From positions 7,998,001 to 8,062,000 of the forward strand of contig NC_135767.1 in NCBI RefSeq assembly GCF_052425735.1: 64,000 nt of DNA, given 5' to 3'. This document shows, piece after piece, positions 292-35,104 of the stretch. The first letter of the stretch is position 1; each line of letters begins with the position of its first letter. The notes under the pieces were generated by a model. That model made no database searches, had not been told where the DNA came from, and saw only the letters and a program-made list of their open reading frames with translations. Both the position numbers and the translations under genes were made by a program. Source of the stretch: Oculina patagonica. Lineage: Eukaryota.

Positions 292-1095
292 CTAATAACA
301 CAGAATTGGACATTGCCAGTTTGCCTCATCCCACAGATAGCGAATCTCCAACGTGGAGAGAATTATTGCAATGCCATTCTTGGCGATGAAGATAGACTCA
401 TCTTTGCCATATTTAAAGTAAACAAACACACGAACGATCAGGAATACCAAGTTGACGCAAACCATCTCCACTGCACTGCGTATTAATGATGTTTTCTTGC
501 GAACCGTCGGTTTTCCGCCGTTAAATTTGTTCTCTGCCATTTGCCAAATCGACAACAACAGACTGAAACATGCCACTACCACCATAGCTATTCCGACGCT
601 TTTCGATATTCCTACGGCATGTTCCTTTTCCTCCAATATAATGTCTAACATTTCCACAACATCTAGGAGATCAATGGCCATCTGGACTGATGATTTGGAC
701 ACTAGCTCTCTGTGTTTGTCAGATTCTTGCGAATCGTCTGCAGTGTTCAGCAACAGTATCAGAAGAACTGGCGTAATGCAAAGAACCATCTTCAAAGTAT
801 TTGGACCAAGGAAATTTTCTTTGTCGATGCCGTCTACGACGAATCCAAATATCAGGATAATGTTAGCTAATAAACCAATGATATACAAGCCCCAGACATA
901 AACCCATCGCCGAAGATCCGCTTCACGTAGAACCATCAAACAGATCCAGATAATTACTACTGGGACATACCAAGCAAACATAAAGAACCAGATGGTGTCT
1001 TTGTACTTGGCTGGGTAAGATGCTAGGAAACCGCACTGAGTTGCTAACAGAGCAAAAAATAGTAGACGTCCTCCCCATTTAACAAACGAAGCCAT
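292..1095 (-). CDS. TMEM121: CECR6/TMEM121-family multi-pass membrane protein, copy 1 (267 aa, intronless)
   Basis: Likely start MASFVKWGGRLL at 1095, by alignment to the paralogs. About six hydrophobic segments. Motifs FLGPNTLK, AIDLLDVVEML and SIFIAKN resemble the TMEM121/CECR6 family. The symbol is family-level only. Confidence 0.85.
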   Translation of the reverse strand: MASFVKWGGRLLFFALLATQCGFLASYPAKYKDTIWFFMFAWYVPVVIIWICLMVLREADLRRWVYVWGLYIIGLLANIILIFGFVVDGIDKENFLGPNTLKMVLCITPVLLILLLNTADDSQESDKHRELVSKSSVQMAIDLLDVVEMLDIILEEKEHAVGISKSVGIAMVVVACFSLLLSIWQMAENKFNGGKPTVRKKTSLIRSAVEMVCVNLVFLIVRVFVYFKYGKDESIFIAKNGIAIILSTLEIRYLWDEANWQCPILCY

Positions 1096-1184
1096 GAGTG
1101 GAGACTTAAGATTTTCTGCCGAGAACTTTACACCGAAGAAAGTGACTGTCTGAGAATGAAAACATAAAAAGCTGAGCAAGGCGC

Positions 1185-1800
1185 CTTTATAAACGAAGCT
1201 ATAACCAATCAGAGGCTGCCATTTGTGAAAACGAGGCATTGTCTAAGAGGGACATTCCCGAATATATTTCGCAATGTAATCTTAAATATCAAGGTTAAAT
1301 AAGTGAGATGGGAAGAACCCCCGTTTTATTTGTTCCCCTTCTTGAATATATACGTCAATCATTCCATTTAATAAAGGGGGAATTACCTAAAATACCTAAA
1401 ATGTGGCATATGCAAATCTCTTCTCGGAAACGGACGCCACATGCCGTTTTCATAGATTTCTCGGAAAGATTAAAGTATTTTCCGAAGCCCTCTGCAAGAT
1501 TTTTTTCCAATATTTTTAAGTACGTTACCTAAAACTGCAGAAATAGTTTATTTTGAATCTTATCGTGGCCTTAGATACAAGGAACTGTTGAACTGCGATT
1601 TGCTGCAGAATCGATTTCTTTTAATATTTTTTATGTGCTAACAAAACCAGCTGCCTTTTTGTAAACTGTTTGTATATGTTGCCTTCTCAAATTTAAGGGT
1701 AAGACCCTTTTGAAATATTTTCATTTTCACCACCTAAAAGTGATGTGTCGCTACCTCATTGGCTATCTGTGTTTACGTATCGTGGCATATATATAAAAAG
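1185..1800. promoter_or_regulatory. Divergent promoter region with TATA, CCAAT, kB-like, octamer and GAS motifs
   Basis: Minus-strand TATAAAG at about 1185-1191 and CCAAT at 1205-1209. GGGACATTCC 1249-1258, GGGAATTACC 1378-1387, ATGCAAAT 1410-1417, TTCTCGGAA 1421-1429 and 1458-1466, ISRE-like TTTCATTTTC 1719-1728. Plus-strand ATTGG about 1758 and TATAAAA about 1792-1799. Confidence 0.55.
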
Positions 1801-1864
1801 TATCATCAAGCTTTTTTCCCATTAGTAAGCACATTTTGCTTGCGACGTTTCTCAATCCAAAGAC

Positions 1865-2653
1865 ATGGTTTCGTTTGCTAAGTGCTGTAAGTGGGTAGCG
1901 CGTGCAGCTTTTTTCGCCCTGATAATAATTCAGTGCTTCTTTCTTGCTGCATATCCGGCCGAATACAAAGATAATTCCAACTGGTATGTTTTGGCTACTT
2001 CGTTTGGCCCAGCAGTTATCGTATGGCTCTGCCTCATTACCAACCAAGCAAAACTTCGCCGGTTGTTCTATGTTTGGGATTTGTACATTATCTGTGCTTT
2101 GATACCCAACATTGCCATCATATTTATCGGTGTCGGAGACAGCATCGACAAGAACAGGTTTCTTGGCCCGAATACTCTGAAGGCGGTTCTGTGCATCACA
2201 CCACTTCTCCTTCTACTGTTGCTCCACACTGCAGACGATTCGGATCAAAATGACGAATACAGAGAAGTAGTGTCCAAGTTGTCCTATCAGATAGCTATTG
2301 ATCTCTTCGATGCTGTGGACATGATAGACATTGTCTTGGAAGAAATCGAACACGACTATGGAATTCCGAAGGGTTTCGGAGCATTGATGATCGTACTGGC
2401 ATGCGTCACATTTCTGTTTTCTGCATGGCAACTGGCGGAAAACAAACTGGCCGGAGGAGAAGCGAAGATTCGTTTTCGAACAGCAATTTGGCGCAACATT
2501 GTGGAGATTGTTCTCGTCAATTTACCTTTCTTGATTATTCGCGCAGTGGTTTTCTTCAAATATGGCAAAGATGAGTCCATCTTCATTGCGAAAAATGGCA
2601 TCGCGATAATACTGTCCTTGTTAGAGATTCGCCATATTTGTGCTTCACGTTAG
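1865..2653 (+). CDS. TMEM121: CECR6/TMEM121-family membrane protein, copy 2 (262 aa)
   Basis: Intact ORF with FLGPNTLK, AIDLFDAVDM and GKDESIFIAKN. TATA box upstream; AATAAA at 2960-2965. Confidence 0.88.
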   Translation: MVSFAKCCKWVARAAFFALIIIQCFFLAAYPAEYKDNSNWYVLATSFGPAVIVWLCLITNQAKLRRLFYVWDLYIICALIPNIAIIFIGVGDSIDKNRFLGPNTLKAVLCITPLLLLLLLHTADDSDQNDEYREVVSKLSYQIAIDLFDAVDMIDIVLEEIEHDYGIPKGFGALMIVLACVTFLFSAWQLAENKLAGGEAKIRFRTAIWRNIVEIVLVNLPFLIIRAVVFFKYGKDESIFIAKNGIAIILSLLEIRHICASR

Positions 2654-3728
2654 CAACCAGCTAAGATTTGTCTGATCAATGTATTACTGATAAAAGTGAA
2701 CATTGAACATTGAACTACCGAGGAACTCATGCCTGAGAAGTATACATGTGAACACGTAAACCTGCTTGGAAACAAATACTTTTAGAGCTAGGACGATAAT
2801 TTTGTCATCAGTCAGCTACTAAAGACAACTTAAATAGCTTGCGTTTCCCTTAATCTTTTGAGGCGATCCGGCCACATCTGTTACTGTTAAATTGATCTGA
2901 TAGTGCATAGCTTCACTGCTTAAATGTGGTCTCAACAAATTTTATTCAGTCGTTGAAGGAATAAACTTAATTTGCACCTTGTATTCATAAGTGTTGTTTT
3001 TGTGTCCTGCAAGAGCATCTTTAAAGTATTAAGTCCCTTAAAAAGCCCTTGCTCCAGGGCTTTGGGCAAAAATAGTGGGGCTTCAGACTGTGGCTTCGAC
3101 CCCAGTTAGCTACTAATTACTTAAGGATCCAAAATATCAATCTGTTGTAAGGAAATTCCCTCAGTGTCACCAGAAAGCCAAGACGTTTTGAGAATGGTGA
3201 ATTTAATTTATTGCTGTACATCTAAGTGTATTCATAACTAATTAGAATGAAGCAAATATACGAGTGCGATTATTTATGGTATCTGGGTATGAAACGATAT
3301 TTTTCACTCTAATACTGCATTAGGTAATACACATAAAGTACGTAACACTCATTTATGGAAGATAAATAGATTAGTTTTTTAACGGTCCCATGCTATAATA
3401 AGCATGATCTAAAAGTGGCCATGATTTAAAGTTTTCTTTCGTAAAGATTTCTCGAAAGGGAAATTTTAAGTTACAAGGAAATTATTATTAACATTAAATT
3501 ATCAACTCAATATACTGTTGTCTGTACCTAATGAAGTTAGGATGTGTTAATAATGTTATGGACACGCGTGACAACATAGGGCTGTATTCTGCGTGTAATA
3601 GTGGAAATAAAATGTGAAAAAAAGCTTCCTTTTGCCTAGTTCTGCTGGCGTTATTTTCACTGGGAAAAGCTATTTATTGTTGCAATTAAATAAAAATTCA
3701 AATTTGTGACAAAGCAAATCGTTTTAGT

Positions 3729-3879
3729 TATAAAGGTCACTGACACAAGACAAATTTCTCAGAAATATGAATGTTCCAGAAACAATGTATGACGTCATAC
3801 TTTAAGAGTAAAGTCTTTTGTTATTTTCAAATTAGCTTTTCTCGGAAGACAACATTGTTTATTATTCGTTTTCTTGGAA
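3729..3879 (+). promoter_or_regulatory. Motif cluster upstream of copy 3: TATA-like, three GAS motifs and a CRE
   Basis: TATAAAG about 3729, TTCTCAGAA 3756-3764, TGACGTCA 3790-3797, TTCTCGGAA 3839-3847, TTCTTGGAA 3871-3879. Further upstream, GGGAATTTCC on the minus strand at 3151-3160. Confidence 0.5.
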
Positions 3880-3985
3880 ACACCGTGCTTAGGCTTAGCA
3901 TACAGGAATGGTATTACTTTAATCAAGGTATTATTAAACCTTGTGTATTATATTGCAGAACACGCATTGTATAAGGGTTAGCATT

Positions 3986-4783
3986 ATGGCTTTATGGCTA
4001 GTTGGGATTGGACGACTCATTTTCTTCGGCTTGGTAATCATTCAAGCCGTTTCCCTGTCTTCATATCCTGCAGAGTATAAACACGATCGTGGCTTCTATG
4101 GACTACTTGTCCTTTATCTCCCTGCTCTCGCACTTTGGATTTATATCATTTGCAATGACAAACATTTGCAGTGGATATTTGCAGTTTGGACATGTTATAT
4201 CGCTGGATTGGTCATCTTCATCGCGATCATCTTTGGTGGAAATGAACCAATCGAGGACAAACTCGACAAAGAAAAGTTTTTCGGTCCAAACATTTTAAAG
4301 ATGACACTTTGTTTAGCCCCGCTAATTCTGTTGCTTCTGCTTAGCACGGGAACCGATTCGATGGTCTACAGGGAGTTGATCTGGAAGTTGTCTCTGCGAA
4401 TGGCACTAGATCTTTTTGATGGAGTGGAAATGTTGGAAGTTATCATCGAAGAAAATGAAGTTAGCCATGAAGTTCCAAGGAGCTTTGAAAAAGCCATACT
4501 TGCCTTTGTTTGTATCAGCTTCTTGCTGTCGCCATTGCAGCTGATAGAGATCAAGCTGAGACGTTTCAGCGGCGATTGGAAAACTCGCACATGCCCAGCC
4601 GCATTGCGAACAACCATCCAAGTCATCTGCGTCAACTGTGTGTTTCTGGGGCTTCGCCTGGATCTTTTTCTGAAGTATGGGAAAGATGCATCCATTTTTC
4701 TCGCTAAAAATGGCATTATAATTTTTCTTGGCCTTTTCGAGATATGTTCGGTCTGTGAATGTTGTGGCTGTGATGAATATTAA
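3986..4783 (+). CDS. TMEM121: CECR6/TMEM121-family membrane protein, copy 3 (265 aa, Cys-rich C-terminus)
   Basis: ATG at 3986 (MALWLVGIGRL) matches paralog starts. Motifs FFGPNILK, ALDLFDGVEML, GKDASIFLAKN; ends CSVCECCGCDEY. Confidence 0.88.
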   Translation: MALWLVGIGRLIFFGLVIIQAVSLSSYPAEYKHDRGFYGLLVLYLPALALWIYIICNDKHLQWIFAVWTCYIAGLVIFIAIIFGGNEPIEDKLDKEKFFGPNILKMTLCLAPLILLLLLSTGTDSMVYRELIWKLSLRMALDLFDGVEMLEVIIEENEVSHEVPRSFEKAILAFVCISFLLSPLQLIEIKLRRFSGDWKTRTCPAALRTTIQVICVNCVFLGLRLDLFLKYGKDASIFLAKNGIIIFLGLFEICSVCECCGCDEY

Positions 4784-6230
4784 TGTAATGACTTTGCAGC
4801 CATGAGATGATAATTTTGTTTCGAGATCTGTAGGGAGCGTTTGTGTGTCAGAAAACGTATGTATAACCATAGCCATCTTTATGTGTTACACGTTATGAAT
4901 TCTTTTAGGAGAAAAGTATTGAGCCGTCTATTGTAAAGACTAAATGTTCAGTCCACGGTTTCATGCAGTAGCCCTTTCTATGGCGAGGAAATGTTTTGAA
5001 TGTAGATTTGTGTAACTGAGTCCCCTTATATTTTGTAACAACCATGTCCACGAGTAGAGAACTGTGCCAGAATCCACAACCAGAAATGTATGGCAGTTAT
5101 GAAGGAAAGACTTGTGTCCAGAGGGACAAGAAATCAGAAGTACACAAATTAAGGCACCTGAACTGATTTCGTGCAAATGTTCTTCAGTGGTCTTGCCGGT
5201 TTGACCGGTTTATTTGTACTGTTAATTTTTGATAAAATAACCAAGTTCCCTGTTTCAGATTGTAGCCGTTCTTTCACTCTTTCAAAAACTTAATAAAAAA
5301 TAAATGCTGTAACTAAAAGGCAGGGAGTGGCCACAGACAAAATGCATCAGAAATCTGGCAGGCAGACTCAGTGCTATTTTGATAGTGCAATTGCAATTCC
5401 TTAAACTTAGTTAACTGGCCTTCCTCCGTGATCGTTACCCTTTGTTTCATGGGAGAATTTCTTTATCTTAACGACAAAGGAGTTAAATGCAAATCAACTC
5501 AGTGCGTCAGAGGTGAGAAGCCGGGCGCATTTAAGCCTTCAGTACCAGACGGGAAAAAAAAGTACTGTGCACAGTGGAGCTTTGCCCAGCTATCAGATTT
5601 ATTATTATGAAATAACCTTTTCATTTTGTTTTGATAAAGCTATAGCATGCACCATTCGTGGCGTAACTAATTTTAACCCCTTGCCTACCAGAGCCAAACA
5701 CACTAAGCAACCGGCGGCCATATTGGACTCATATTGAATTATTAATAAGATTCAAAATTTGCTAAGCAATGGCATCTTTTCAAGTAAAGTACACCTAGAT
5801 TAAGCATTTAAAATGTATTCCAATCTCTTTTCCGCATTCTCTTACTGTACAGTTGCCTCGTATAGCTCCCTAGCTAACACCTTGACCATGTGCATTTGGA
5901 GGTTTAATTTCTTCGATCGATCAAAACTTCTTCTTCATCGCCAGCTTCTTCTTCTTTTTGTTTAGACTATTGAGAATCTGAGTGACTTGGCACAAATTCG
6001 CTGTGACTTAAATCACTTACATCAAAGTCGCGTTCCCCCAATTTTTTATCTGTTTCCCTTCTGCCTTTACCCACACGAGCCGCCTAACTTGTCTGAACGA
6101 AAAGCAATTTTATTGGGTCAGCAGTCTTTTGAAAGTAGTGCCAGCCCTTTCTCAACAACCGGGGATGATTTATTCAAGGCAGGCTCTCAGTAATGCCGTT
6201 GCCGGTCGTTGCGTGATAACAGATTCAATC

Positions 6231-6582
6231 GGGGAATCCCCTAAATTACCTAAAATGTGGCATATGCAAATTTTTTTTCTCGGAAGCAGAGTCCACGTGC
6301 CGTTTTCACTAATTTCTCGGAAAGAAAAATTCAAAGCGCTTTACGTATTCAAATCGTATCGTGGTCTTTGATACAAAAACTGTTGAAATATGCCATCCGA
6401 TTTGCCGCATTGATCACGTTTATACACATGATGTCATTCGTAAACTCTTACTATGTTGCATTCTTAATTTAAGGGTAAGTCCCTTTTGAAATATATTCAT
6501 TTTCACTACCTAAAAGCGAGGTGTCGCTACCTCATTGGCTATCTGTTGGCTATCTGTGTTTACGTATCGTGGCATATAAAAA
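6231..6582 (+). promoter_or_regulatory. Promoter of copy 4 with kB, octamer, two GAS, CCAAT and TATA motifs
   Basis: GGGGAATCCCC 6231-6241, ATGCAAAT 6264-6271, TTCTCGGAA 6277-6285 and 6314-6322, GGGTAAGTCCC 6473-6483, ATTGG about 6534, TATAAAA about 6576. Confidence 0.55.
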
Positions 6583-6647
6583 GTAGCATCAAGCTTTTTC
6601 CCCATAAGTAAGCACATTTTGCTTGCGACGTTTATCAATCCAAAGAC

Positions 6648-7436
6648 ATGGTTTCGTTTACTAAGTGCTGTAAGTGGGTAGCGCGTGCAGTTTTTTTCGC
6701 CCTGATTATAATTCAGTGCTTCTTCCTTGCTGCATATCCAGCCGAATACGAAGATAATTCCAACTGGTATGTTTTGGCTACTTCATTTGGCCCAGCAGTT
6801 GTCGTGTGGCTCTGCCTCATTGCCAACAAAGCAAAACTTCGCCGGTTGTTTTATGTCTGGGATTTGTACATTATCTGTGCCTTGATACCCAACATTGCCA
6901 TCGTATTTATCGGTGTCGGAGACAGCATCGACAAGAACAAGTTCCTTGGCCCAAATACTCTGAAGGCAGTTCTGTGTATCACACCACTTCTCCTTCTACT
7001 GTTGCTGCACACTGCAGACGACTCGGATCAAAATGACGAATACAAAGAAGTAGTGTCCAAGTTGTCATATCAGATGGCTATTGATCTCTTCGATGCTGTG
7101 GACATGATAGACATTGTCTTGGAAGAAATCGAACACGACTATGGAATTCCGAAGGGATTCGGAGCATTGATGATCGTACTAGCATGCGTCACATTTCTGT
7201 TTTCTACATGGCAACTGGCAGAAAACAAACTGACCGGAGGAGAAGCGAAGATTCGTTTTCGAACAGCAATTTGGCGCAACATTTTGGAGATTGTTCTCGT
7301 CAATTTACCTTTCTTGATTATTCGCGCAGTAGTTTTGTTCAAATATGGCAAAGATGAGTCCATCTTCATTGCCAAGAATGGCATCGCGATAATACTCTCC
7401 ATGTTAGAGATTCGCCATATTTGTGCTTCACGTTAG
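6648..7436 (+). CDS. TMEM121: CECR6/TMEM121-family membrane protein, copy 4 (262 aa; recent duplicate of copy 2)
   Basis: Intact ORF with about 15 mostly conservative amino acid differences from 1865-2653. AATAAA about 7736. Confidence 0.88.
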   Translation: MVSFTKCCKWVARAVFFALIIIQCFFLAAYPAEYEDNSNWYVLATSFGPAVVVWLCLIANKAKLRRLFYVWDLYIICALIPNIAIVFIGVGDSIDKNKFLGPNTLKAVLCITPLLLLLLLHTADDSDQNDEYKEVVSKLSYQMAIDLFDAVDMIDIVLEEIEHDYGIPKGFGALMIVLACVTFLFSTWQLAENKLTGGEAKIRFRTAIWRNILEIVLVNLPFLIIRAVVLFKYGKDESIFIAKNGIAIILSMLEIRHICASR

Positions 7437-9039
7437 CAACCAGCTAAGATTAGTCTGATCGACGTACTACCGACAAAAATGAACATTGAACTACCGAGGA
7501 ACTCATGCCTGAGAAATATACATGTGAAAATGCGAACCTGCTTGGAAACAAATCCTTTTGGGGGACAATAATTTCGTCATCAGTCAGCTACTATAGACAC
7601 CATATAGCTTGCGTTTTCCTTAATCTTTTAAGGCGATCCGGCCACATTTATTACTGATGAAATGATCTGATAGTACATAGCTTCATATCTTGCATGTGGT
7701 CTGAATTGAAACAGAATTTCTTTAGTCGTTAAAGGAATAAACTTATTTGGTTTCAAAGTGCTGTTTGTGTGACCAGCAAGAACATCTTTGAATATAAAGT
7801 CTTAAAAGAAGCCCTTGCTCTAGGACTTTGAGCAAAAGAAGTGGGGCTTCAGACTCTACCATACTCAGCTACTATTAAAGGATCCAACATGTCAATCTGT
7901 TGTAACGAAATTGTCTCAGTGTCACTAAAAAGTAATAAGCATGATCTGATAGTGGTCATGATTTCAAGTTTTTTTCTCGTGAAGATTTCTCGAAAGGGAA
8001 ATTTTAGGTTACAAGGAAATTATTATTAACATTAAGTAATCAACTAAATATACTGTTGTCTGTACCTAATAAAGTAAGGATGTGATAATAATGTTATGGA
8101 CACGCGTGACAACACAGGGCTGTATTCTGTATGTAATAGTGGAAATAAAATGTGAAAGAAAGTTTCCTTCTGCCTAGTTCTGTTGGCGTTTATTTTACTG
8201 GGAAAAGCTATCTATTGTTGCAGTTAAATAAAAATTCAAATCTGTGACAAAGCAAATCGTTAATTAGTTATAAAGGTCACTGACAGTAGACAGATTTCTT
8301 AGAAAAATGAATGTTCAAACATCATTGTATGACGTCATACTTTAAGAGTAAAGTCTTTTGTTATATTCAAATCAGCTTTTCTCGGAAGACAACATTAATT
8401 ATTATTCGTTTTCTTAGAAAGACCGTGCTTCAGCTTAGCATACAGTATTACTTTAATCAAGGAATTATCAACCCTTGTGTCCGGCAGAACACGCACCCGC
8501 AGTTTTGGTTGGTTTACTCTTTTTCTTCGGCTTGGTAATCATTCAAGCCTTAATACTTTTCCCTGTCTTCATATCCTGTAGAGTACGTATTAAATAGATT
8601 TAGCCAAGCCTAAAAGTGGAGCTCTTAAGTTTTTATTATTTTATGCGAAGTTTTTTTTATGTTAATGATGCAGAAACAACAGCAAATAATCAGTCAGGTA
8701 ATCAATCAAAAAGAAAATAATTGGCTAACAGTACTATTAGTTAGCAATCTGTGCAAAAACATAAGCCATGTACAGTTGTGACTTTAAAAAGGGGGTAAAC
8801 AGTATTTTTAGATCCAATTTTGCGGCAAAAGGGGCTATTATATAACTAAGACAGGGAAAATGAGTTAAAATGTGGTATGGTTAGGGCTACATACCACAGC
8901 TGGGTGGTTTAGCTACTTTGTGGCAAATAATTAGATATTCATATATGTTGCTTATCAACGTTTTCCTTTTCTCAAATATTTTTTCATCTTAATTAATAAG
9001 TGTCATGATGGGCTAGCATCCCATCCTAGGTGTACTAAA

Positions 9040-9347
9040 AAAAAAGGAAGCCTCAAGCCAACTGGCCCATACTGCCTGAGCTTATCCCGGTTTGATAGCA
9101 TTAAGCGCCTAGGAATATTTCCCCCTGAATGGGATGCTAGCCCATCGCAGGGTACCCCCCCACACACACACACACACACACACAGCATTATGTCGCTGGT
9201 ACCCATTTATACACCTGGGTGGAGAGAGGCACTATGAGAGTAAAGTGTCTTGCCCAAGAACACAACACAATGACCCCGGCCAGGCCTCGAACCTGGACCG
9301 CTCGATCCAGAGTCCAGCGCACTAACTATTAGGCCACTGGGCCTCCC
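9040..9347 (-). mobile_element. tRNA-derived SINE with Deu/Nin-like core
   Basis: Minus-strand head with A box TGGCCTAATAGTTAG and B box GGTTCGAGGCC; core TTCTTGGGCAAGACACTT...CCACCCAGGTGTATAAATGGGTACC. 12-bp TSD AGGTGTACTAAA at 9028-9039 and 9349-9360. Confidence 0.85.
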
Positions 9348-9774
9348 AAGGTGTACTAAATGGCAGGGTAATTAGGCCTATTTTCACCTGCTTCATGTAT
9401 AATTCTTTTAAAGTGATAATCTTGTTTTAAAATCTCTAAATGCATTTATAAAGAGATCACATCCTAACGTTTTTCTCTAGGGTGTGATGCAGGCCAGGGT
9501 TGCCAAAATTTTAACAGCAACAGACAGACAAATATTTGTGTTATGAATATTCCTGACTGCAATTTCAGCATTTACAGTATTTCAACATCTCATGACCTAT
9601 TCCATAATCATGATAGACTGTTCTGTTTGAATAAATAGGTCCTTCCTTATTGACACAATTGCCATTTATTAGCATCACACCCCCTCCATTTGTTAACTTC
9701 TTTTGAAGTTTATTCATCAGCCCATATTTCTGGTCCAGATCTTTTCATATGAAGGTAAAAAAAAGGTTCAGTCT

Positions 9775-9940
9775 GTATTCGCGCCTAGTGGACCATCAGC
9801 CAAGAGCTCATCCCGGTTTCAGAAGATGAAGTGACTAGGAGTATTTTTACTATTCCTGGATGGAATGCTTATCTATTATGGGGTTACCCCCCCCCCCCCA
9901 CACACACACACACACACACAGCATTAAACCATTAGGCCAC
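9775..9940 (-). mobile_element. Truncated copy of the same SINE family (tail part)
   Basis: Similar to 9050-9190 (agagctcatcccggtttc...ctaggagtattt...gggttacccc followed by CA repeats and cagcatta). Confidence 0.55.
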
Positions 9941-10802
9941 AGTGACTGCACCTCTCATAGCAAGGCCTTTAGATAAACAACTGAAATACTGAGTGAAAGT
10001 GATACAATCAAAGTCAGTTATAATCTATCAGGGTCAATCAGTCCTTTTACTATAATTTTTTTATTTTCTTACCTTTCCTTTGTTTGATATAACAAAATAA
10101 AATGATATGTTTTAACATAACTACTTTCAAAACTTCCAATAAGAGGTGGACATGGACGAGTTCTTACAGGAACATGTACTTTCTGTAACATGCACTGAGC
10201 ATTAAAACCACAAATAGTACATTGTATGATACCAAATTATTTTTTTTTTCACTCCAAATTAAAACCAATAAGCAAATTCTGTTTAATAGGAGCATTTGCT
10301 AGATTGCATGAAAACAAAAAAACAGTGTAAGAAATAGTTGATACAAAAATTGCTATTAAGGCATTCAGACTTTTTTATAGATGGCTTACAGAAGTTCAAC
10401 TCCAAGGCCATAAATAAATATTGTGCATCATTTCATCAACGTCATCTACCGGTATGTCTGTAAATAGAACAAAAGCAAGCAAACAATGCCATGTTAATAG
10501 CTGCAGAGTAACAAACACTCACAAAACACATGAACACTGAGTGGATGTTGTGTACAGCTGTAGTATATTCAATAATTGACCATAATTAAACTTAGCAAAA
10601 TTTTCTATTGAATGCTATACCACAAGATCCAAAGCCAGTTTTGAATGTTTTGGATTAAATGTTTGGTTTGTTTATTTATTTTTTTGAAACCAGTTTGATT
10701 TTCATTTCCCTTTGAATCAGATAATTTATGATAATGAATGTGAGACAAAGAAAGATAAAAAATACAAATAACCCTGTTTGCTTTTGTTGTTGTGTCCCCA
10801 TG

Positions 10803-11502
10803 CAGGATTCATGCTCTTTTGGCATTCTGAAATTCCATGTCTCTCCATGACCTTTTCCATGACACTTCGATGGTTTCCATGACCTAAATTTGACCATTTT
10901 CATTGGACATTTTTGAAAAATTATCTTGATTCCAGGTTTGTTTTAACCTTTCATTCACAAAAATAGCTTGCCTAATTTATTTTGTACAATCACTTATCAG
11001 AACCAATTTCCATGAACTCATGACCCACACTAAAATTCCATGACTTTCCAGGCCTGTAAAATGAAATTCTAAAATTCTATAGCTTCTCCAGGCTTGGAAA
11101 ATGAAATTCTAAAATTCCATGACTTTCCGCCTCCCGTACCTTTTACTCCCGCTTCCCGTACCTTTTACTCCCGCCTCCCACCCCTTTCCGTAGCTGTTCT
11201 CTCCTGTTTGTTCCATGTCTATTGCGAAATATAATGAAATGTTACGAAATTTCACTCGTTTTCTCCCGGTTCCCACCACTTTAGGAATCCCGCTTCCCGC
11301 CCTCTCTCCTCCCGCTTCCCGCCCCTTTTCTCCCGTGCTCCCGCCCCCTTGTCCCCCTCCACTGGAAAATGAAATTCTAAAATTTCATGACTTTCCAGGC
11401 TTGGAAAGTGAAATTCTAAAATTCCATGACTTTCCAGGCTTGGAAAATGAAATTCTAAAATTCCATGACTTTACAGGTTTTCCATGGCCTGTACACACCC
11501 TG
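10803..11502. repeat. Probable non-autonomous DNA element containing 39-bp tandem repeats
   Basis: Unit TGACTTTCCAGGCTTGGAAAATGAAATTCTAAAATTCCA repeated at about 11030-11128 and 11363-11471. CAGG...CCTG ends; no clear TSD. Confidence 0.5.
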
Positions 11503-12276
11503 CTATGGGGGGCTGGGGTTTCATATGCGTACATACAAAGTGGGAGCCATATGCACTTCACCACAGCTGCCAATACAACAGCCAAAATTTCACATGTAAC
11601 CAGTCAGCATCAATTATACTAAGTCACTTTCCCCTTTAATTCTTACTCTTAATCATAACAACATTTGTTATCCATGTTTTACATGTATTCTGTGCACTTC
11701 TCAGTTGTGAAAGGCCTGAAGAGGTTTCATTTGCTCATTAATCAAAATCAAACGAAATGCCACAGTTTAAACTCAAAGTTTAGTAAGTGTAAAATCCTAC
11801 AGTAAGTGTCTATAAAACCTACAGAAAAATATAAACGACTAAACCGACAAAAATCAGATTTTGAATTAATTCAGACTTACCTCATTTTGGGAGAACGCTG
11901 ATCATTTAAGTAGCGCAAAGCTTTTAAATCAGCTTTATAAATATCAGAGACGAAGCAGCGGTTTTTTCCTATTATTACGCAACTCCGTATTAAAGTAGCT
12001 AGTTGAACAAACATGGTTCTCATCTTCCCGGCGATTTGACCGTTGATATTTGTTATTGTTTAAACGGCTTGCCAGAATCTCTCAACTGTTACAGAATCTG
12101 AAAGAGAAAGGTCATCCCGCGGTAGAACGAATGATAACCAGGGCGAGTTCAGTTGTTTAGCTCGACCAACTTCTGGAGTATGGCCGCCATCTTGGTTTTT
12201 GCGCGACACCGTACGGACGCGCCCGCGAGCCATGCCGCTAGCCATGTAAACAATGAAAACTCATTTCGATAGCTTA

Positions 12277-12445
12277 CAGCAAGGCGCCCAAAAGTGTGAC
12301 CACTTTTAATTTATTCACATTCTTCCGTGCAGATTTAATCCAATCAGAAGTCAACTGGAACCTGTCCTTGGCTTCTGATTGGATGGTGGTTGCACGAAAG
12401 AATGTGAATTAATTAAAGGTGGTCACACTTTTGGGCGCCTTGCTG
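12277..12445. mobile_element. Tc1/mariner-type MITE
   Basis: TIRs CAGCAAGGCGCCCAAAAGTGTGACCAC and its reverse complement, with TA on both sides. Confidence 0.8.
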
Positions 12446-12490
12446 TAAAATATAAAAATGTTTAAAACAGATCTAAAAATACAAAACGAT

Positions 12491-12533
12491 ACTCTAAATT
12501 TTCGATCGCCTTCTGCGGTCTTCTTCAGAGAAT
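12491..12533 (-). ncRNA. Minimal type I hammerhead ribozyme motif in the Penelope pseudo-LTR
   Basis: Reverse complement reads ATTCT-CTGAAGA-A-GACCGC-AGAAG-GCGATC-GAAA-AT-TT-AGAGT: stem I, CUGANGA core, stem II, GAAA, palindromic minimal stem III. Confidence 0.7.
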
Positions 12534-12580
12534 GATGGATTTTTGCAAGGTTCGCAGAATTCTAATAAGCTACATCGACG

Positions 12581-13036
12581 TTATTGTTCGTTGTCCCCCT
12601 GGGGAGCAACTAGCGATGCGTAAACCCTTGGGAAGGGCGCTCTTTCGTTAATAGTGTTTTTGCCGAGGAAGGAATGCAAGGATTCCAGAAACAGTCTTTT
12701 GCTCTTGCTGCTTACACCTGTTTCAAGAATTTCGGCGTAACTTGGATGTATGTCGTGGCCGATTTCTGCATGATGTTTAATCGCGGAGTTGATATTTCCG
12801 TTTGTTCCGGGCTTGTGTTCGGCTCCCCGCGATTTCCAGTTTCTTTTGCTTTCCCCAACGTATGCAAATGGACATGTCCTGCAAGTCACTTTGTACACGA
12901 TTCCTTTCAATTGATCTTTATTCGGTCGGTCCTTGGGCTTTTTGAAGATATTTCCTAACGTTCGTACTGGTTTAAACGCTGTCTTGATGTTTTCGCGGCT
13001 CAAAATCCGTCGAACGCGCTCCGACACTCCTTTCAC
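12581..13036 (-). CDS. Penelope-like element RT C-terminus and GIY-YIG endonuclease (fragment)
   Basis: GIY-YIG motif with the CxxC spacer and downstream H and E residues typical of Penelope endonucleases. No true start codon. Confidence 0.8.
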   Translation of the reverse strand: MKGVSERVRRILSRENIKTAFKPVRTLGNIFKKPKDRPNKDQLKGIVYKVTCRTCPFAYVGESKRNWKSRGAEHKPGTNGNINSAIKHHAEIGHDIHPSYAEILETGVSSKSKRLFLESLHSFLGKNTINERAPFPRVYASLVAPQGDNEQ

Positions 13037-13220
13037 ATATGGAATGGACGGGTATGCCTTCGGATTCTCCTGGGTTCTTGGTTGCGTGTTTGTTTTGTTT
13101 GATTCGCCAGCTGACTTGATAAAGCTCTCGGGATAACCGTTACACGCTTTTAAGTCATTAATAACGCGTTGTTTCTCGTTTTGTCTTTGCGCAGTTGTTG
13201 ATGGAATGCACTTAGCTCGG

Positions 13221-13509
13221 CACAGGGAGCAGAGGAACCAAATTCGACCTTTGTAAATATTAAAATGTTCGATCTATTTCGCAGCGCTTCTCCCGCCCTG
13301 GTTGCTGGTTATCTGATCATTTTGTTTACGCGACGGTTAAACCAGCGGGAATCCTGTTGCGCTTGGTGTAGCCGCAGGCTCAATAGACTATTGAACGAGC
13401 TTAACCGTCGCGTAAACAAAAAGATCGGATAACGTATGACAAGCGCTACGAAATAGATCGAACATTTTAATATTTACAATGGTCGAATTTGGCTCCTCTG
13501 CTCTCTGTG
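13221..13509. mobile_element. P-element-type MITE inserted in the Penelope ORF
   Basis: TIRs begin CACAGGGAGCAGAGG (CANRG motif). 7-bp TSD AGCTCGG at 13214-13220 and 13510-13516. Removing it restores the minus-strand frame LMDRAKCIP. Confidence 0.8.
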
Positions 13510-13660
13510 AGCTCGGTCCATTAAAGCAAAACAAAAACACTATAAACGAAAGAGCGCCCTTCCCAATGGTTTACGCATCGCTAGTTGCTCCCCAGGGGGA
13601 CAATGAACAATAACGTCGATGTAGCTTATTAGAATTCTGCGAACCTTGCAAAAATCCATC

Positions 13661-13703
13661 ATTCTCTGAAGAAGACCGCAGAAGGCGATCGAAAATTTAG
13701 AGT
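13661..13703 (+). ncRNA. Minimal type I hammerhead ribozyme motif in the inverted pseudo-LTR copy
   Basis: ATTCTCTGAAGAAGACCGCAGAAGGCGATCGAAAATTTAGAGT, identical to the reverse complement of 12491-12533. Confidence 0.7.
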
Positions 13704-14418: not shown

Positions 14419-14421
14419 TAA

Positions 14422-25113: not shown

Positions 25114-25275
25114 NNNNNNNNNNNNNNNNNNNNNNNNNNNNNNNNNNNNNNNNNNNNNNNNNNNNNNNNNNNNNNNNNNNNNNNNNNNNNNNNNNNNNNN
25201 NNNNNNNNNNNNNNNNNNNNNNNNNNNNNNNNNNNNNNNNNNNNNNNNNNNNNNNNNNNNNNNNNNNNNNNNNNN
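25114..25275. other. Assembly gap
   Basis: Run of N. Confidence 1.
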
Positions 25276-28820: not shown

Positions 28821-28931
28821 TTATCTCACAGTTGTCTCCGTAGAAGTCCGCTGGACAAGTACAGTTATACCCACCAGGATGCCTACTGCATGTGCCACTA
28901 TTTTGGCAGGGAGAGCTGGTGCAGTTGTCAA
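28821..28931 (-). CDS. EGF-like domain exon (phase 1-1)
   Basis: [36 protein letters not shown]; 111 nt; canonical splice sites. Confidence 0.82.
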
Positions 28932-32221: not shown

Positions 32222-33034
32222 ATGGCTTCACCGTTGGTCTGGTTGGGACGAATAGCCTTTTTCGTTCTGATGATCCTCCAGAGCGTTTCATTCGCTTCCT
32301 ACCCAGCAAAGTACGAAAATCAAAATGGCTGGTACGGATTGCTGCTCCTCTATCTCCCCGCTTTAATTCTGTGGTTCTACATTCTATACGACGAAGGAAA
32401 ACTCCGTTGGATCTTCTTCGTTTGGGGCCTTTATGTGTGGCTTGCTTTGGTGCCCACCGTCGGGATAATATTTGGAATCGTCGAAGAAAAACTTGAGAAA
32501 GGCGTGTTTTTTGGTCCAAATGTGTTAAAAATGACCTTCTGTTTAACCCCGCTTCTCCTGCTGTTGTTGCTGAACACCGGAGCCGATTCACATGAATACA
32601 GAGAGCTCGTGTCCAAGCTGTCCTTTCAGATAACTCTGGATCTCTTCGACGGTGTTGAAATGTTGGAAGTTATCCTCGAAGAGAATGAGCTCCTGCATGG
32701 TCTTCCGAAGGGATTTGAGAACGCCATAATCGCCATCGTTTGTATAAGCTTCCTGCTCTCTCCTGGTCAACTGATGGAAAACAAACTGCAAGGAAATCGC
32801 CAATGGAAGATCCATCGATGTTCATCAGCCTTGCGTATTACCATCCAAGTTCTTTGCGTCAATACGGCCTTTCTGGGGCTTCGTTTAGTGCTGTTTTTCG
32901 AGTTCGGAAAAGATGCATCCATTTTCATCGCTAAAAATGGCATCATTATTATCCTTGGCTTTCTGGAGTTATGTTCGATTTTTAGCTGCTGTGGATGTGA
33001 GCAGGATCAAGAACAAAATTTAATAATCATTTAA
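32222..33034 (+). CDS. TMEM121: CECR6/TMEM121-family membrane protein, copy 5 (270 aa)
   Basis: Intact ORF with FFGPNVLK, TLDLFDGVEML, GKDASIFIAKN and tail CSIFSCCGCE. Upstream TTCTGGGAA at 32073-32081 and GGGAAGTTTC at 32178-32187. Confidence 0.88.
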   Translation: MASPLVWLGRIAFFVLMILQSVSFASYPAKYENQNGWYGLLLLYLPALILWFYILYDEGKLRWIFFVWGLYVWLALVPTVGIIFGIVEEKLEKGVFFGPNVLKMTFCLTPLLLLLLLNTGADSHEYRELVSKLSFQITLDLFDGVEMLEVILEENELLHGLPKGFENAIIAIVCISFLLSPGQLMENKLQGNRQWKIHRCSSALRITIQVLCVNTAFLGLRLVLFFEFGKDASIFIAKNGIIIILGFLELCSIFSCCGCEQDQEQNLIII

Positions 33035-33180
33035 AGGAGCATCGACCAAGTCTACAGTGCCAACCATATATCCGATAAGGATTTTTTCCCTGCTTAGATG
33101 ATCTTTTTTTTTGCAGCTTTATTTCTAAACAATAAGTAATTTTGTCGGAGTTAGACTTCCCTTTTTGTCAATATGGACTA

Positions 33181-33581
33181 CAGTAAAAACCCGCGAGTAA
33201 GAACATAACATTAAGAACCTGTTAGGCTAAAATTTGCAAATTAGACCCAATTTCTATAAAAACCTAATATTTAGCCTAAAATTTGAAAACAGGTTCTTAC
33301 TTTCTAAAACTGATTAAAAATGTTTACTTTTGGGGGGGGAAAATATGATATGATTAGTGCTTCATTTTGACATAAACTCTATGTGGTATGCAAATTTTAT
33401 ACAAGAAAAAGGCCGAATACCACTAAAATCTCTATAACAACATTGAAATTTTTTCTTCAGGGAAAAATAAGAATCTATTAAGAACCTAAGTAGCCTTAAT
33501 TTGTGTTAATAAACCTTTATGTAAGAACCTGTTTAGGCTAACCTGAAAAACAATAGGTTCTTACTTGCGGGGTTTTTACTG
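33181..33581. mobile_element. pogo/Tigger-type MITE
   Basis: TA|CAGTAAAAACCCGCGAGTAAGAAC ... GTTCTTACTTGCGGGGTTTTTACTG|TA. Confidence 0.8.
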
Positions 33582-34309
33582 TATCTTTATATAATCAATC
33601 ACTAATTTGCTTCCAAACTTTACACATTTAATGGTACCCTTTTATTTGGCACAAGTTAGAGTGTAATGAGTAAGCAGTATACTTTACGTATATTTAAGGT
33701 ACTATACTTTTGACTGGATATGTGGGTAGCTTATTGTCGGCTCGGGATAGAGAGACTCAGCCCGAGCCCTGCCGGTGTTATGTTGTGTTCTTGGAAGGTA
33801 AAATTCTACCCTCGTGCCAAAATAGGCCACCTCAACGGAAGTTATCCTGGTTTCTATAGCATGCTAGGACATCACAGGTTTCCCTCCAGCATTTTGACAG
33901 GTTGCCCTAGCATTTGGCCGATACTTATTCAATGTCGGACGGCAGGAAGAATATAGAACTATTAATACTCCAGCTAGGTGGAAAAGGTCCGGCCAGTGAG
34001 AATAGATTGTATTGCATACTGTAAACACAACAATAATAAATGCGCTTAGCCAGAGCTCGAATCTGGTTTCAGACTGAGTCAAATTCGCAAAGCATTTTAG
34101 CCATGTACTGCAGCTTCCTTTCTTAGACACTTAGACAAGGCACCTTGACTGAGTCTTGCAGTGCTGTTTTAGGGCAACCTTAAAAACTGCTGTAGGGTGA
34201 CCTGTAAATGACAAGCTACCCAAACTCCATGTGATTGTTTTCATCTACTTATCAGCATCTTTAATTAAACGAAGAAATATATCTTAAGAGTTATTAAGCG
34301 TTAAAAGTC

Positions 34310-35104
34310 ATGGCTTCACCATTGATATATTTGGGACGAGCTGTTTTCTTCATCTTGGTGATTATTCAAGGCGTTTTCTTAGCTTCTTACCCAGCAAAGT
34401 ACGAAAATCAAATTGGCTGGTATGGAATATTAGTCCTCTATCTCCCTGCCCTGATAGTGTGGTCATGTATCTTGCGTAACGAGGGACAACTTCGATGTTT
34501 TTTTCTTGTTTGGGGATTATATACTTGGCTTGCATTAGTTCCCAGCATTGGGGTCATCTTTGGACTTGTCGAAGATAAACTCGAGAAAGAAACGTATTTT
34601 GGTCCAAACGTCTTGGGATTAAGCCTGAGTATTTCTCCACTTATTCTGCTACTGTTGCTTAACATCGCGACTGATTCACTTGAATATTCAGAGCTGATAA
34701 CAAACTTGTCTTTTCGAATGATACTGGACTTATTCGACGGCATTGAAATGCTAGACGTTGTCCTGAAAGAAAGCGAATTCAACCATGGAGTTCCTACGAG
34801 TTTAAAGAAAGCCATGATTGCTGTTGCGTGTAACGTTTTCTTGCTGTCGCCTTTTCAACTTGCAGAGATCAAATTTGAAGGACACGGTAGTTATCAAATC
34901 CGAAGAGTTCCATCAGCCTTACGCACCACCATCAAAATTGTATGTGTCGATAGTGTGTTGCTAGGGCTTCGCATAGATTTGCTATTGAACTTTGGCAAAG
35001 AATCTATCTTTATTGCTAAAAATGGCATCATAATTATTCTTGGATGTTTGGAGTTATTGTCAATGTTCAGACCACGAATTGCAGTGGACCTTGTAAATAA
35101 ATAA
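34310..35104 (+). CDS. TMEM121: CECR6/TMEM121-family membrane protein, copy 6 (264 aa)
   Basis: Intact ORF with YFGPNVL, ILDLFDGIEML and GKESIFIAKN (one codon shorter than paralogs). Closest to copy 5. Confidence 0.85.
   Translation: MASPLIYLGRAVFFILVIIQGVFLASYPAKYENQIGWYGILVLYLPALIVWSCILRNEGQLRCFFLVWGLYTWLALVPSIGVIFGLVEDKLEKETYFGPNVLGLSLSISPLILLLLLNIATDSLEYSELITNLSFRMILDLFDGIEMLDVVLKESEFNHGVPTSLKKAMIAVACNVFLLSPFQLAEIKFEGHGSYQIRRVPSALRTTIKIVCVDSVLLGLRIDLLLNFGKESIFIAKNGIIIILGCLELLSMFRPRIAVDLVNK

Follow-up and report, generated by a model that had tools for sequence, protein, structure and literature searches.

Mammals have two genes of the TMEM121 family, as compared to about 20 divergent genes in tandem clusters in the coral, and to our knowledge the sole role reported for vertebrate TMEM121 is that of an ERK/MAPK suppressor. 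Human TMEM121 has been described as spanning the membrane six times, and as having a proline-rich motif in the cytoplasmic C-terminal tail and an N-terminal ERK D-domain (PMC9366253). The locus analyzed here is a stretch of 64,000 nucleotides from Oculina patagonica (contig NC_135767.1, positions 7,998,001 to 8,062,000), in the following called the window. With vertebrate TMEM121 (hole) and TMEM121B (CECR6), its proteins share a full-length match to the Pfam family PF14997, the predicted fold and six strongly hydrophobic segments. In structural alignments, however, the window protein is only 14-20% identical to them, and in comparison to human TMEM121 (319 aa) the window proteins are about 50-60 residues shorter. 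TMEM26 (PF09772) and TMEM236 have the same predicted fold and are the nearest neighbours of the window proteins in language-model features, and weak Pfam cross-matches were obtained with c2 and c4; both are longer than the window proteins (about 345-370 aa), and the window genes reach 87-110 bits on PF14997 but at most 17 bits on PF09772. A chromosome-5 paralogue that was scanned exceeds the cut-offs of both models.

As in birth-and-death families (Nei and Rooney), such as chemoreceptor and MHC clusters, the tandem copies at the locus were duplicated at different times, some have decayed to pseudogenes, and old subtypes with orthologues in other corals occur beside gains restricted to one lineage. 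Unlike in chemoreceptor and MHC clusters, diversifying selection was not detected in NG86 pairs, a variable ligand-facing surface is absent from the predicted model, and turnover is slow: since a dS of about 0.13, one copy has been gained and one lost in the window.

Gene complement and family assignment

According to the ORF listing, six ORFs in the window are intact, each a single exon that codes for 262-270 aa, and a seventh copy is broken; this is the complement of paralogs that the original prediction had described, and the PF14997 matches agree with it. The features are:

292..1095, minus strand: c1, intact single-exon gene, 267 aa, subtype A; ORF 292-1239(-), PF14997 108 bits
1865..2653, plus strand: c2, intact single-exon gene, 262 aa, subtype A; ORF, PF14997 110 bits
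3986..4783, plus strand: c3, intact single-exon gene, 265 aa, subtype B; ORF 3941-4783(+), PF14997 103 bits
6648..7436, plus strand: c4, intact single-exon gene, 262 aa, subtype A, young duplicate of c2
8470..8585, plus strand: 5' piece of the pseudogene; BLAST and MAFFT alignment to c3 positions 3930-4077
8586..15421, no strand assigned: composite mobile-element insertion, about 6.8 kb; repeated termini D7, D8 and D17 and junction sequence
15422..16133, plus strand: 3' piece of the pseudogene; alignment, PF14997 88 bits
21681..21921, no strand: N run 1, intergenic, touching no family member
25114..25275, no strand: N run 2, intergenic, touching no family member
32222..33034, plus strand: c5, intact single-exon gene, 270 aa; ORF, PF14997 108.5 bits
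34310..35104, plus strand: c6, intact single-exon gene, 264 aa; ORF, PF14997 87 bits

A tblastn search with the copies against the window returned exactly these seven loci and no further fragments. Single-exon status refers to the coding regions only, and the UTRs may be spliced. For c1, the start was set at ATG 1095 from homology (MASxxxWxGR); an alternative ATG is present at 1239, with a CCAAT-TATA block (1184-1210) downstream of it. The genes c1 and c2 are arranged head-to-head, and c2 is preceded by an inverted CCAAT (1758-1762) and a TATA (1788-1798). The start of c3 at ATG 3986 is homology-supported, and c3 is identical to the public predicted protein P0187. The two N runs lie in intergenic DNA; 5.5 kb separate the first from the pseudogene and 6.9 kb the second from c5, and the reading frame of every copy is therefore independent of them. 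An ORF at 21597-22109, which crosses N run 1, was rejected as a gene, as it is an artefact of N read as X. Among read runs, the stretch was found only in some that are guessed, and not recorded, to be RNA. Their contigs represent slightly different genotypes (95-99% alike to the window); coverage is confined to coding sequence, a pattern that DNA of a close relative would also give, and the start of one contig lies upstream of the TATA-like box by more than 100 bp.

The TMEM121/CECR6 assignment had been made from the sequence alone, with a profile search proposed as a check. That search gave matches to PF14997 (CECR6/TMEM121) for seven of seven copies at 87-110 bits (E 1e-24 to 1e-31), well above the gathering cut-off of 25 bits. 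All six intact copies cover model positions 3-192 of 194, and the truncated ORF of the pseudogene reaches 88 bits. The motifs YPAxY, GPNxL, DL[FL]DxxxM and SIFxAKNGI, which were claimed to be kept throughout, were found in the alignment in all six intact copies.

In full, the cluster measures about 90 kb and holds nine intact genes and two pseudogenes; the window represents its proximal part, and the second pseudogene lies distally at chromosome position 8,076,206-8,076,941. In the genome, 24 or more loci match PF14997, and they occur on at least six different chromosomes. Two of the chromosome-7 copies encode proteins that are identical to NCBI entries of O. patagonica. Three loci elsewhere score 187-200 bits and are the canonical TMEM121-like copies, which group in the tree with canonical genes of Nematostella and Actinia. 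It was considered whether the window genes are themselves TMEM121 orthologues; this was rejected, as they fall into a separate clade (canonical and divergent genes split at 99/99, starred) and are not the best-scoring PF14997 copies of the genome. They are related to the canonical TMEM121-like genes as paralogues and constitute a divergent, short, tail-less subfamily of the TMEM121/TMEM26 superfamily. In the canonical genes of this genome the domain likewise lies in one open frame, and the lack of introns is thus probably ancestral to the family. The cluster is a real, previously undescribed expansion within the TMEM121 family.

Subtypes, segmental duplication and the split pseudogene

Subtype A consists of c1, c2 and c4 (support 100/99, starred) and subtype B of c3 and the pseudogene (100/98, starred), both as originally proposed; the proposed third subtype did not hold, as c5 and c6 form no resolved clade in the tree. 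Indeed, c5 is 62% identical to c3 and 60% to c6, the window copy with the greatest divergence. Both the A and the B clade contain Acropora, Montipora and Porites besides robust corals, and the two subtypes are older than the split of complex and robust corals. The named homologues from two window-gene searches were all scleractinian, most database matches being nameless, and a profile search added a Nematostella member as distant kin of the divergent clade in sea anemones. Assessed through named matches within Hexacorallia, the relatives are thus stony corals and a sea anemone, in line with the cnidarian origin that had been suggested.

Cluster position and gene order are common to the window and Desmophyllum. 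The VWA/tyrosinase neighbour in Desmophyllum has its match 4-8 kb upstream of c1, the distal cluster genes match one-to-one, and the order across the N gaps is that of the Desmophyllum contig, with A-type genes, a c5-like gene and distal A-type genes. A contig of a related coral (L026) carries a c5 orthologue (96% identical) that adjoins a c6 orthologue (93% aa identity). Other clades, all starred, are species-specific, namely c2/c4 here (sisters at 100/99, starred) and genes 408-412 in Desmophyllum.

The self-BLAST of the window revealed a two-gene unit in two copies:

1675..5218, plus strand: copy 1, containing c2 and c3 with flanks
6452..16578, plus strand: copy 2, containing c4 and the split c3-type pseudogene, enlarged by the 6.8-kb insertion

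The matching segments are 1675-3177 with 6452-7932 (89%), 3396-3946 with 7933-8480 (90%) and 4076-5218 with 15422-16578 (93%). The c2 and c4 products share 94% aa identity (95% at the nucleotide level), with 15 conservative and scattered differences. The dS values of c2/c4 (0.129) and c3/pseudogene (0.121) are both near the flank divergence, and a single segmental duplication copied the c2-c3 pair at a dS of about 0.13. This corresponds to about one fifth of the Oculina-Desmophyllum orthologue divergence (0.65). Of the old and "very recent" duplications that had been predicted, the former stand, with dS values up to saturation, and the latter require qualification, the youngest being at a dS of about 0.13.

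The pseudogene carries four lesions in total. In its 5' piece, a 28-nt deletion removed the ATG and a 7-nt insertion shifted the frame. A second frameshift, in the 3' piece, stems from 4 nt that were inserted near 15505. The mobile-element insertion interrupts it at codon 31, with TA on either side, and is composed of two units (8588-13862 and 13863-15421) that have termini in common. A first look at the genome yielded more than 1000 candidates for the 3' terminus; the 40 that were scored are 88-99% identical, and nearly all of them extend to the last base (15421). For the 5' terminus there are 441 candidates, the majority of which start at 8587/8588. The insertion is a high-copy mobile element, and the identity of its terminus to other copies (up to 96-99%) suggests that it is young. 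In the order of events, subtypes A and B were in place ahead of the complex/robust split, and lineages gained copies separately, with c2 giving rise to c4 here and with genes 408-412 arising in Desmophyllum. At some time after the c2-c3 pair had been duplicated, the new c3-type copy lost its ATG, acquired two frameshifts and was split by the 6.8-kb element.

Two parts of this history could be read differently. The residual 210-aa ORF at 15501-16133(+) is identical to the public predicted protein P0280, and the broken copy might thus live on as a functional, 5'-truncated gene, given that the frame of the 3' piece is open with a dN/dS of 0.17 to c3 (188 codons) and that only about 9 non-synonymous differences are found where neutral drift since the duplication would predict about 30. 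We consider this unlikely, as the first 22 residues of the ORF are read out of frame, helices 1-2 and most of helix 3 are lacking, an own promoter is not recognisable in an upstream sequence that is the end of the mobile element, and a recent inactivation explains the low dN/dS equally well. Gene conversion among old tandem copies, that is, concerted evolution, could also have produced the species-specific clades; similar tandem copies on the same strand are its usual substrate. The coding identity of c2/c4 (95%) indeed exceeds that of the flanks (89-90%), but this excess follows from a dN/dS of 0.2, and the c3/pseudogene pair next to it has an equal dS, as expected from one segmental duplication. 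As the non-coding flanks are in addition co-linear over more than 3.5 kb at roughly the same divergence, and as subtypes A and B remain distinct across corals, conversion appears improbable, slightly more so than a living truncated gene.

Selection and the nature of the array

Pairwise dN/dS values were determined by NG86, which is insensitive to a small number of positively selected sites, and lie at 0.10-0.37 for all paralogue and orthologue pairs that include window genes. Values are 0.19-0.20 for c2/c4, 0.17 for c3/pseudogene, 0.10 (c5) and 0.19 (c6) against the L026 orthologues and 0.19-0.30 against Desmophyllum. Judged from these coding sequences, every testable intact copy is under purifying selection. 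No difference was found between loops and helices (pooled dN/dS 0.32 and 0.27). In Desmophyllum, the young pair 408/409 is under relaxed constraint, with a dN/dS of 0.54 overall and 0.72 in loops.

We think that the locus is, with good probability, an old, positionally conserved coral tandem array of divergent short TMEM121-like genes that evolves by birth and death under purifying selection. The predicted tandem expansion with turnover is borne out by dS values from 0.13 to saturation, two pseudogenes, orthologous subtypes and lineage-specific gains. The further step, from turnover to an immune, sensory or environment-facing family, is not: dN/dS is 0.10-0.37 with loops similar to helices, an ectodomain is lacking, and the c2/c4 changes are conservative. 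A diversifying repertoire, with turnover driven by an arms race or by ligand tracking, would agree with a tandem expansion that includes pseudogenes, with the independent duplications in several corals and with the relaxed Desmophyllum pair, and transmembrane pockets do let chemoreceptor families diversify without large loops. We nonetheless regard it as having little chance in view of the low dN/dS in all pairs with window genes, its similarity in loops and helices, predicted loops of 1-8 residues without an ectodomain or signal peptide-like feature, and Oculina-Desmophyllum orthologues that were kept one-to-one at a dS of 0.65-0.88. That the copies are assembly artefacts (uncollapsed haplotypes), transposon passengers or retroposed copies might be suspected from their intronless state, their multiple copies on at least six chromosomes and the richness of the cluster in mobile elements. 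This is very improbable: paralogues diverge by 5-45%, far beyond allelic levels, the duplicated units differ in structure, the c5-c6 pair also occurs on an independent contig of another coral, and Desmophyllum keeps position and order. Purifying selection acts throughout, the canonical TMEM121-like genes are single-frame as well, so that intron absence is probably ancestral, and self-BLAST of the window found no shared terminal repeats around the genes.

Predicted structure and possible function

The AF2 model of c2 (pLDDT 80, pTM 0.80) predicts a compact eight-helix bundle of six strongly hydrophobic and two amphipathic helices, in which all loops comprise 1-8 residues. The hydrophobic helices agree with Kyte-Doolittle 19-mers of at least 1.6 in six segments (11-29, 41-59, 73-91, 105-123, 173-191 and 212-230), and neither model nor hydropathy profile contains an ectodomain or signal peptide-like feature. 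A Foldseek search of AFDB Swiss-Prot matched TMEM121 from chicken, mouse and human with TM 0.70-0.73 and TMEM121B with TM 0.75-0.80, each with probability 1.00 and with predictions on both sides. Beyond TMEM121, predicted models of TMEM26 (TM 0.52-0.72) and TMEM236 (0.46-0.48) were matched. The fold search that had been suggested thus gave solely predicted TMEM121, TMEM26 and TMEM236 models; a likeness to solved structures was not found (Foldseek E at least 0.6; VIA-align Z at most 11.8, in the generic helical-bundle range), and a 4+4 internal repeat was not significant (hhalign E 0.37).

The proteins stop 18-31 residues past the conserved AKN of the last helix, so that the part following the helix itself measures from a few to some 15 residues. 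A proline-rich tail is present in none of their C-termini, and the motif of human TMEM121 is therefore absent. The C-termini of c3 (CECCGC) and c5 (CCGC) carry cysteine clusters, and such CCGC clusters after the last helix, also present in the chromosome-7 copies, are putative palmitoylation sites. Conservation is highest at polar or charged residues within helices (Q23, Y30, Y34, W71, Y74, the GPN-LK motif, D146/D149, R226 and K243-N244). Since these residues lie within helices and the loops are so short, we propose an action within the membrane; based on the predicted model and conservation, we think that the protein may handle small solutes, ions or lipids, or be a regulatory subunit embedded in the membrane. 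The loops of 1-8 residues in the predicted model speak against a surface receptor that binds ligands through an ectodomain. A transport, channel or lipid-handling role is a tentative option, and a role as signalling regulator, as reported for vertebrate TMEM121, seems somewhat more doubtful. It is a rather bold idea, and an unlikely one, that the short tail-less genes are a hexacorallian innovation, providing new membrane-embedded handlers of small molecules, ions or lipids, or chemoreceptors, on the TMEM121/TMEM26 fold. If so, copy number would follow coral-specific biology, for example symbiosis, calcification or chemical sensing, and work on these genes could reveal for the first time what proteins of the TMEM121/TMEM26/TMEM236 superfamily do biochemically.

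The genes and the extent of the cluster

Six intact single-exon TMEM121-like genes and one broken copy had been read from the sequence, and the ORF listing bore this out with six long ORFs and one shorter ORF at the expected places. The start codons of the intact genes, here called c1 to c6, were picked by homology support.

TMEM121-like loci of the window (window positions)
292-1095, minus strand: c1, 267 aa
1865-2653, plus strand: c2, 262 aa
3986-4783, plus strand: c3, 265 aa
6648-7436, plus strand: c4, 262 aa
32222-33034, plus strand: c5, 270 aa
34310-35104, plus strand: c6, 264 aa
15501-16133, plus strand: remnant ORF of the pseudogene, 210 aa, out-of-frame start

All seven copies match the Pfam model CECR6_TMEM121 (PF14997) at 87-110 bits (gathering cut-off 25), covering model positions 3-192 of 194, and each intact copy contains the four motifs that had been named as conserved (YPAxY, GPNxL, DL(F/L)DxxxM and SIFxAKNGI). 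A tblastn search of the whole window with the copies found no family copies or fragments beyond these seven loci. Two runs of N (21681-21921 and 25114-25275) lie in AT-rich intergenic sequence, 5.5 kb 3' of the remnant and 6.9 kb 5' of c5, with no family ORF near or across either of them; the sole ORF across a gap, 21597-22109, was rejected as a product of translating N as X. The placement of c1-c4 and the remnant relative to c5-c6 rests on the scaffold, and the same order is found on a contiguous Desmophyllum pertusum contig (OS493_029408-029416), which carries, one after another, genes of the c1/c2/c4 type (subtype A), a c5-like gene and distal A-type genes.

Consensus matches to a CCAAT box and a TATA-like box occur 65-100 nt 5' of the proposed ATG of c1, c2 and c4, and as this block in c1 lies downstream of an alternative upstream ATG, the 267-aa product is favoured. 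Among the promoter words, a single 8-mer is common to four promoters. A search of sequencing runs found none recorded as RNA that contains the stretch. Contigs from four runs presumed to be RNA, which belong to three studies, are 95-99% alike and lie mostly over the coding regions of c1, c2 and c3, with no joints inside these. This pattern agrees with unspliced coding regions, and it is also expected from the DNA of a close relative in which the intergenic sequence falls below the 95% threshold. Sequence look-ups with c2 and c5 found no exact matches, and the contigs with homologues came from Tara metagenome DNA or were Logan contigs lacking poly(A).

In the window's own 529-Mb assembly, a six-frame profile search gave 24 PF14997 loci. 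Three of these, at 187-200 bits, encode canonical proteins of about 340 aa with a C2HC-like C-terminal tail, and the remaining loci (33-111 bits) form small tandem groups on the chromosome-scale contigs 1, 5, 7, 10 and 12; two copies on contig 7 have exactly the sequence of NCBI proteins of Oculina patagonica, which makes the genome that of this species or of a very close relative. The limits of the cluster were sought by tblastn over 40 kb added on either side of the window. No family copies were found in the upstream 40 kb, and three further intact genes lie downstream, at 8.080, 8.084 and 8.088 Mb of the chromosome. A second, degraded pseudogene lies 14 kb past the window end on the minus strand (C10:8,076,206-8,076,941); what is left of it corresponds to c3 residues 1-108 and 203-263 (47-50%), with the middle part absent. 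The full cluster thus spans about 90.5 kb (7,998,295-8,088,761), with nine intact genes and two pseudogenes, and is broken by about 43 kb containing a retroelement and a discoidin/EGF-type gene.

Within that break, window positions 36598-41312 have the appearance of a young LTR-type retroelement, in which ORFs that include a DUF5641 match at 127 bits are bounded by two 382-nt direct repeats (36598-36979 and 40933-41312; 99.2% identical). A gene that encloses or adjoins a tandem duplication of 5.4 kb (50070-55450 vs 57075-62453, 98.8% identical) has an F5/8 type C (discoidin) exon at 50000-50404 (58.5 bits); an EGF-like ORF at the same gene (62099-62443) is weak and below threshold.

Subtypes and age

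A maximum likelihood tree of 62 rows (IQ-TREE, LG+C20+F+G4 PMSF; the 76-aa fragment L023 omitted) was rooted on the canonical clade, which unites the three canonical genes of this genome with Nematostella and Actinia genes and is split from a divergent clade with support 99/99*. Deep branches of the divergent clade are the contig-12, contig-5 and contig-10 (14.84 Mb) loci and the Nematostella protein LOC5504952 (309 aa). Every short coral gene falls into a crown group of 46 rows (99/99*). Long branches were flagged for contig-12, contig-10 14.84 Mb, contig-1 14.062 Mb, Nematostella and A. millepora 021, and these leave the statements made here unaffected.

Two of the three proposed subtypes are recovered. 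Subtype A (100/99*) contains c1, c2, c4, the distal 8.080 and 8.084 genes, six Desmophyllum genes and genes of Orbicella, Acropora and Montipora, and subtype B (100/98*) contains c3, the remnant and genes of Acropora, Porites, Montipora and Stylophora, a membership that makes both subtypes older than the split of complex and robust corals. The proposed third subtype of c5 and c6 is not established, as these two genes form an unresolved comb with a contig-7 trio and a Pocillopora gene. Species-specific clades, namely c2 with c4 (100/99*), two genes of one further coral contig, and the Desmophyllum genes 408-412 (97/92*; numbers shortened from OS493_029408-029416), indicate independent recent gains.

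Synteny was examined by tblastx of two 20-kb Desmophyllum contig pieces against the cluster region. A Desmophyllum VWA/tyrosinase gene matches chromosome positions 7,990,003-7,994,085, which are 4-8 kb upstream of c1; Desmophyllum 408 matches c2 (79%), 416 matches the 8.080 gene, and the counterpart of the 8.084 gene (72%) is a gene beside a peptidase-S28 gene. The entire cluster is therefore older than the divergence of Oculina and Desmophyllum, both robust corals. Four or five members of the family also occur on each of several other coral contigs, and c5 and c6 have adjacent orthologues on an independent Logan contig of a related coral (L026).

Pairwise Nei-Gojobori estimates
c2 / c4: dS 0.129, dN/dS 0.20
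c3 / remnant 3' piece: dS 0.121, dN/dS 0.17
c5 / L026 orthologue: dS 0.21, dN/dS 0.10
c6 / L026 orthologue: dS 0.18, dN/dS 0.19
Oculina / Desmophyllum orthologues: dS 0.65-0.88, dN/dS 0.19-0.30
Desmophyllum 408 / 409: dS 0.25, dN/dS 0.54

For the older pairs of the window dS is saturated, and their dN/dS is 0.15-0.37.

A two-gene duplication and its disabled copy

Self-BLAST of the window aligned c2 and its flanks (1675-3177) with the c4 region (6452-7932) at 89%, the sequence upstream of c3 (3396-3946) with 7933-8480 at 90%, and the c3 region (4076-5218) with 15422-16578 at 93%. Together these matches indicate that a unit of two genes, c2 and c3, was duplicated in tandem. Gene conversion was considered as an alternative, and the equal dS of c2/c4 and c3/remnant, together with a matching divergence of about 10-11% in the non-coding flanks, is better explained by a single segmental duplication.

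The alignment of the remnant (8470-8585 and 15422-16133) with c3 shows four lesions: the loss of the ATG through a 28-nt deletion, a 7-nt insertion at codons 20-22, an insertion of 6.8 kb (8586-15421) after codon 31 with TA on either side, and a 4-nt insertion near 15505. Between c3 and the remnant there are about 9 non-synonymous differences, against about 30 expected under neutrality, and the low dN/dS of the remnant implies that constraint was kept over most of the time since the duplication. It follows that the copy was disabled recently or, less likely, that it still works as a truncated gene. The public protein collection includes c3 and also the 210-aa remnant ORF (P0280) as predicted proteins, and the latter entry, for 15501-16133, is probably an annotation artefact. 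ORFs of 156 aa lie on the minus strand opposite c3 (4406-4876) and opposite the pseudogene (15756-16226); the former had no Pfam match, and both are probably spurious and conserved solely since the two loci are recent duplicates.

The insertion consists of two units, 8588-13862 and 13863-15421, which have both termini in common. The 5' end reads TATTAAATAGATTTAGCC...GGAGCTC, and the 3' end has a GC hairpin, GCGGCCC-TTC-GGGCCGC, followed by GAGCTCCGC. A first look over the genome with the 160 nt of the 3' terminus gave more than 1000 candidates; identity is 88-99% among the 40 that were scored, almost all of which extend to the last base. The 5' terminus, about 38 nt, is likewise repeated, with hundreds of candidates that mostly begin at 8587/8588. 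Further copies of the element lie at C2:34596230-34596732 and C4:64416239-64416686, and paired matches about 0.5 kb apart elsewhere in the genome suggest a MITE-like family. The termini do not fit canonical Helitron ends. An ORF in the insert (12581-13036) appears GIY-YIG-like by eye and had no Pfam match. For coral genomics the cluster illustrates slow birth-and-death at good resolution: a two-gene duplication can be dated, and a mobile element has killed one gene.

Predicted structure, selection and proposed role

The AlphaFold2 model of c2 (pLDDT 80, pTM 0.80, from a 51-sequence alignment) is nearly all helix, with eight helical elements (H1-H8) joined by loops of 1-8 residues. Six spans are strongly hydrophobic, and two helices are amphipathic, H5 (130-163, with the acidic DLFDxVxMxDxxLEE) and H8 (238-260, SIFIAKNGI...). 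Entropy over 47 crown-group sequences is lowest in H4 (0.92), followed by the GKDE turn that precedes H8 (1.27), H5 (1.49) and H8 (1.55), and the residues kept in at least 90% of the rows include Q23, Y30, Y34, W71, Y74, K106, C110, P113, D149, R226, K243 and N244.

A fold search against predicted models gave TM scores of 0.70-0.80 for TMEM121/TMEM121B, 0.52-0.72 for TMEM26 and 0.46-0.48 for TMEM236, with further matches among unnamed cnidarian and invertebrate proteins. Foldseek found no relative in the PDB with E below 0.6, and VIA-align against 48,161 chains returned only generic four-helix and GPCR-like bundles (Z up to 11.8, within the noise range for helical proteins). An internal 4+4 repeat received no significant support from hhalign of the N-half against the C-half profile; the one match of 18 columns (E 0.37), pairing the run-in and start of H4 with the corresponding part of H8, is a hint at most. 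The UniRef name of the Nematostella member, "XK-related protein", was rejected, as Pfam finds PF14997 alone; XKR structures were absent from the fold searches. Weak Pfam cross-hits to Tmem26 support one TMEM121/TMEM26 superfamily. L022, of the divergent pair L022/L024 at C5:3.91 Mb, passes both cut-offs (CECR6_TMEM121 42.9 bits, Tmem26 24.3 bits) and could form a link in sequence from one family to the other.

The C-termini differ within the family. Unlike vertebrate TMEM121, c3, c5 and the contig-7 coral genes end in a CCGC-type cysteine cluster, which likely provides palmitoylation sites. The canonical L001, L002 and L003 end in CxxC...H...C, resembling a C2HC zinc finger (the homologue P0141 is annotated PF13913), and this motif is absent from the short clade. 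The contig-1 paralogues L019 and L020 (C1:14.07 Mb) have long Ser/Thr/Pro-rich C-terminal tails with PPxY-like motifs, and one of them has two PPPY motifs resembling WW-domain or Nedd4-type binding sites, which have no counterpart in the window genes.

The original prediction had taken tandem expansion with turnover as pointing to an immune, sensory or environment-facing family. When the codons of nine pairs were split by predicted structure, the pooled dN/dS was 0.27 in helices and 0.32 in loops, lowest in H4 (0.12) and H8 (0.17) and highest in H1 and H2 (0.38), and at the resolution of such pairwise pooled values there is no sign of diversifying selection. The cluster is not evidence of an immune or sensory repertoire, and a diversified surface receptor is an improbable reading. 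A compact polytopic protein that has no ectodomain, keeps polar and charged residues within its helices and is under steady purifying selection points instead to a function within the membrane, and judging from the model the short TMEM121-like protein would act there. A role in a small-solute, ion or lipid pathway may tentatively be proposed on the same basis; somewhat more doubtful is a role as a membrane-embedded regulator of a signalling partner, such as has been proposed for vertebrate TMEM121.

TMEM121, TMEM121B, TMEM26 and TMEM236 are conserved animal membrane proteins, and TMEM121B maps to the cat-eye-syndrome region. For none of the four is a biochemical activity or a solved structure known. 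Neither the family nor its Pfam model is new, and public annotation predicts these coral proteins as "uncharacterized"; full-text literature searches found no paper that names TMEM121 or PF14997 in cnidarians, nor one that connects TMEM121 with TMEM26 and TMEM236. New here are a short, tail-less clade in which every named member is a coral, the age of that clade, its conserved cluster, and a reconstructed gain and loss of one gene each. It is a real finding, and represents a subfamily, or a further member, within a known family. In corals the family includes about 20 compact versions that consist of the core alone; they lie in old, syntenic tandem clusters and are under purifying selection. 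These minimal variants point to the residues and helices that matter, namely H4 with GPN-LK, the acidic H5, and H8 with SIFxAKNG, and the coral proteins, being small and without a tail, lend themselves to expression, structure determination and assays.
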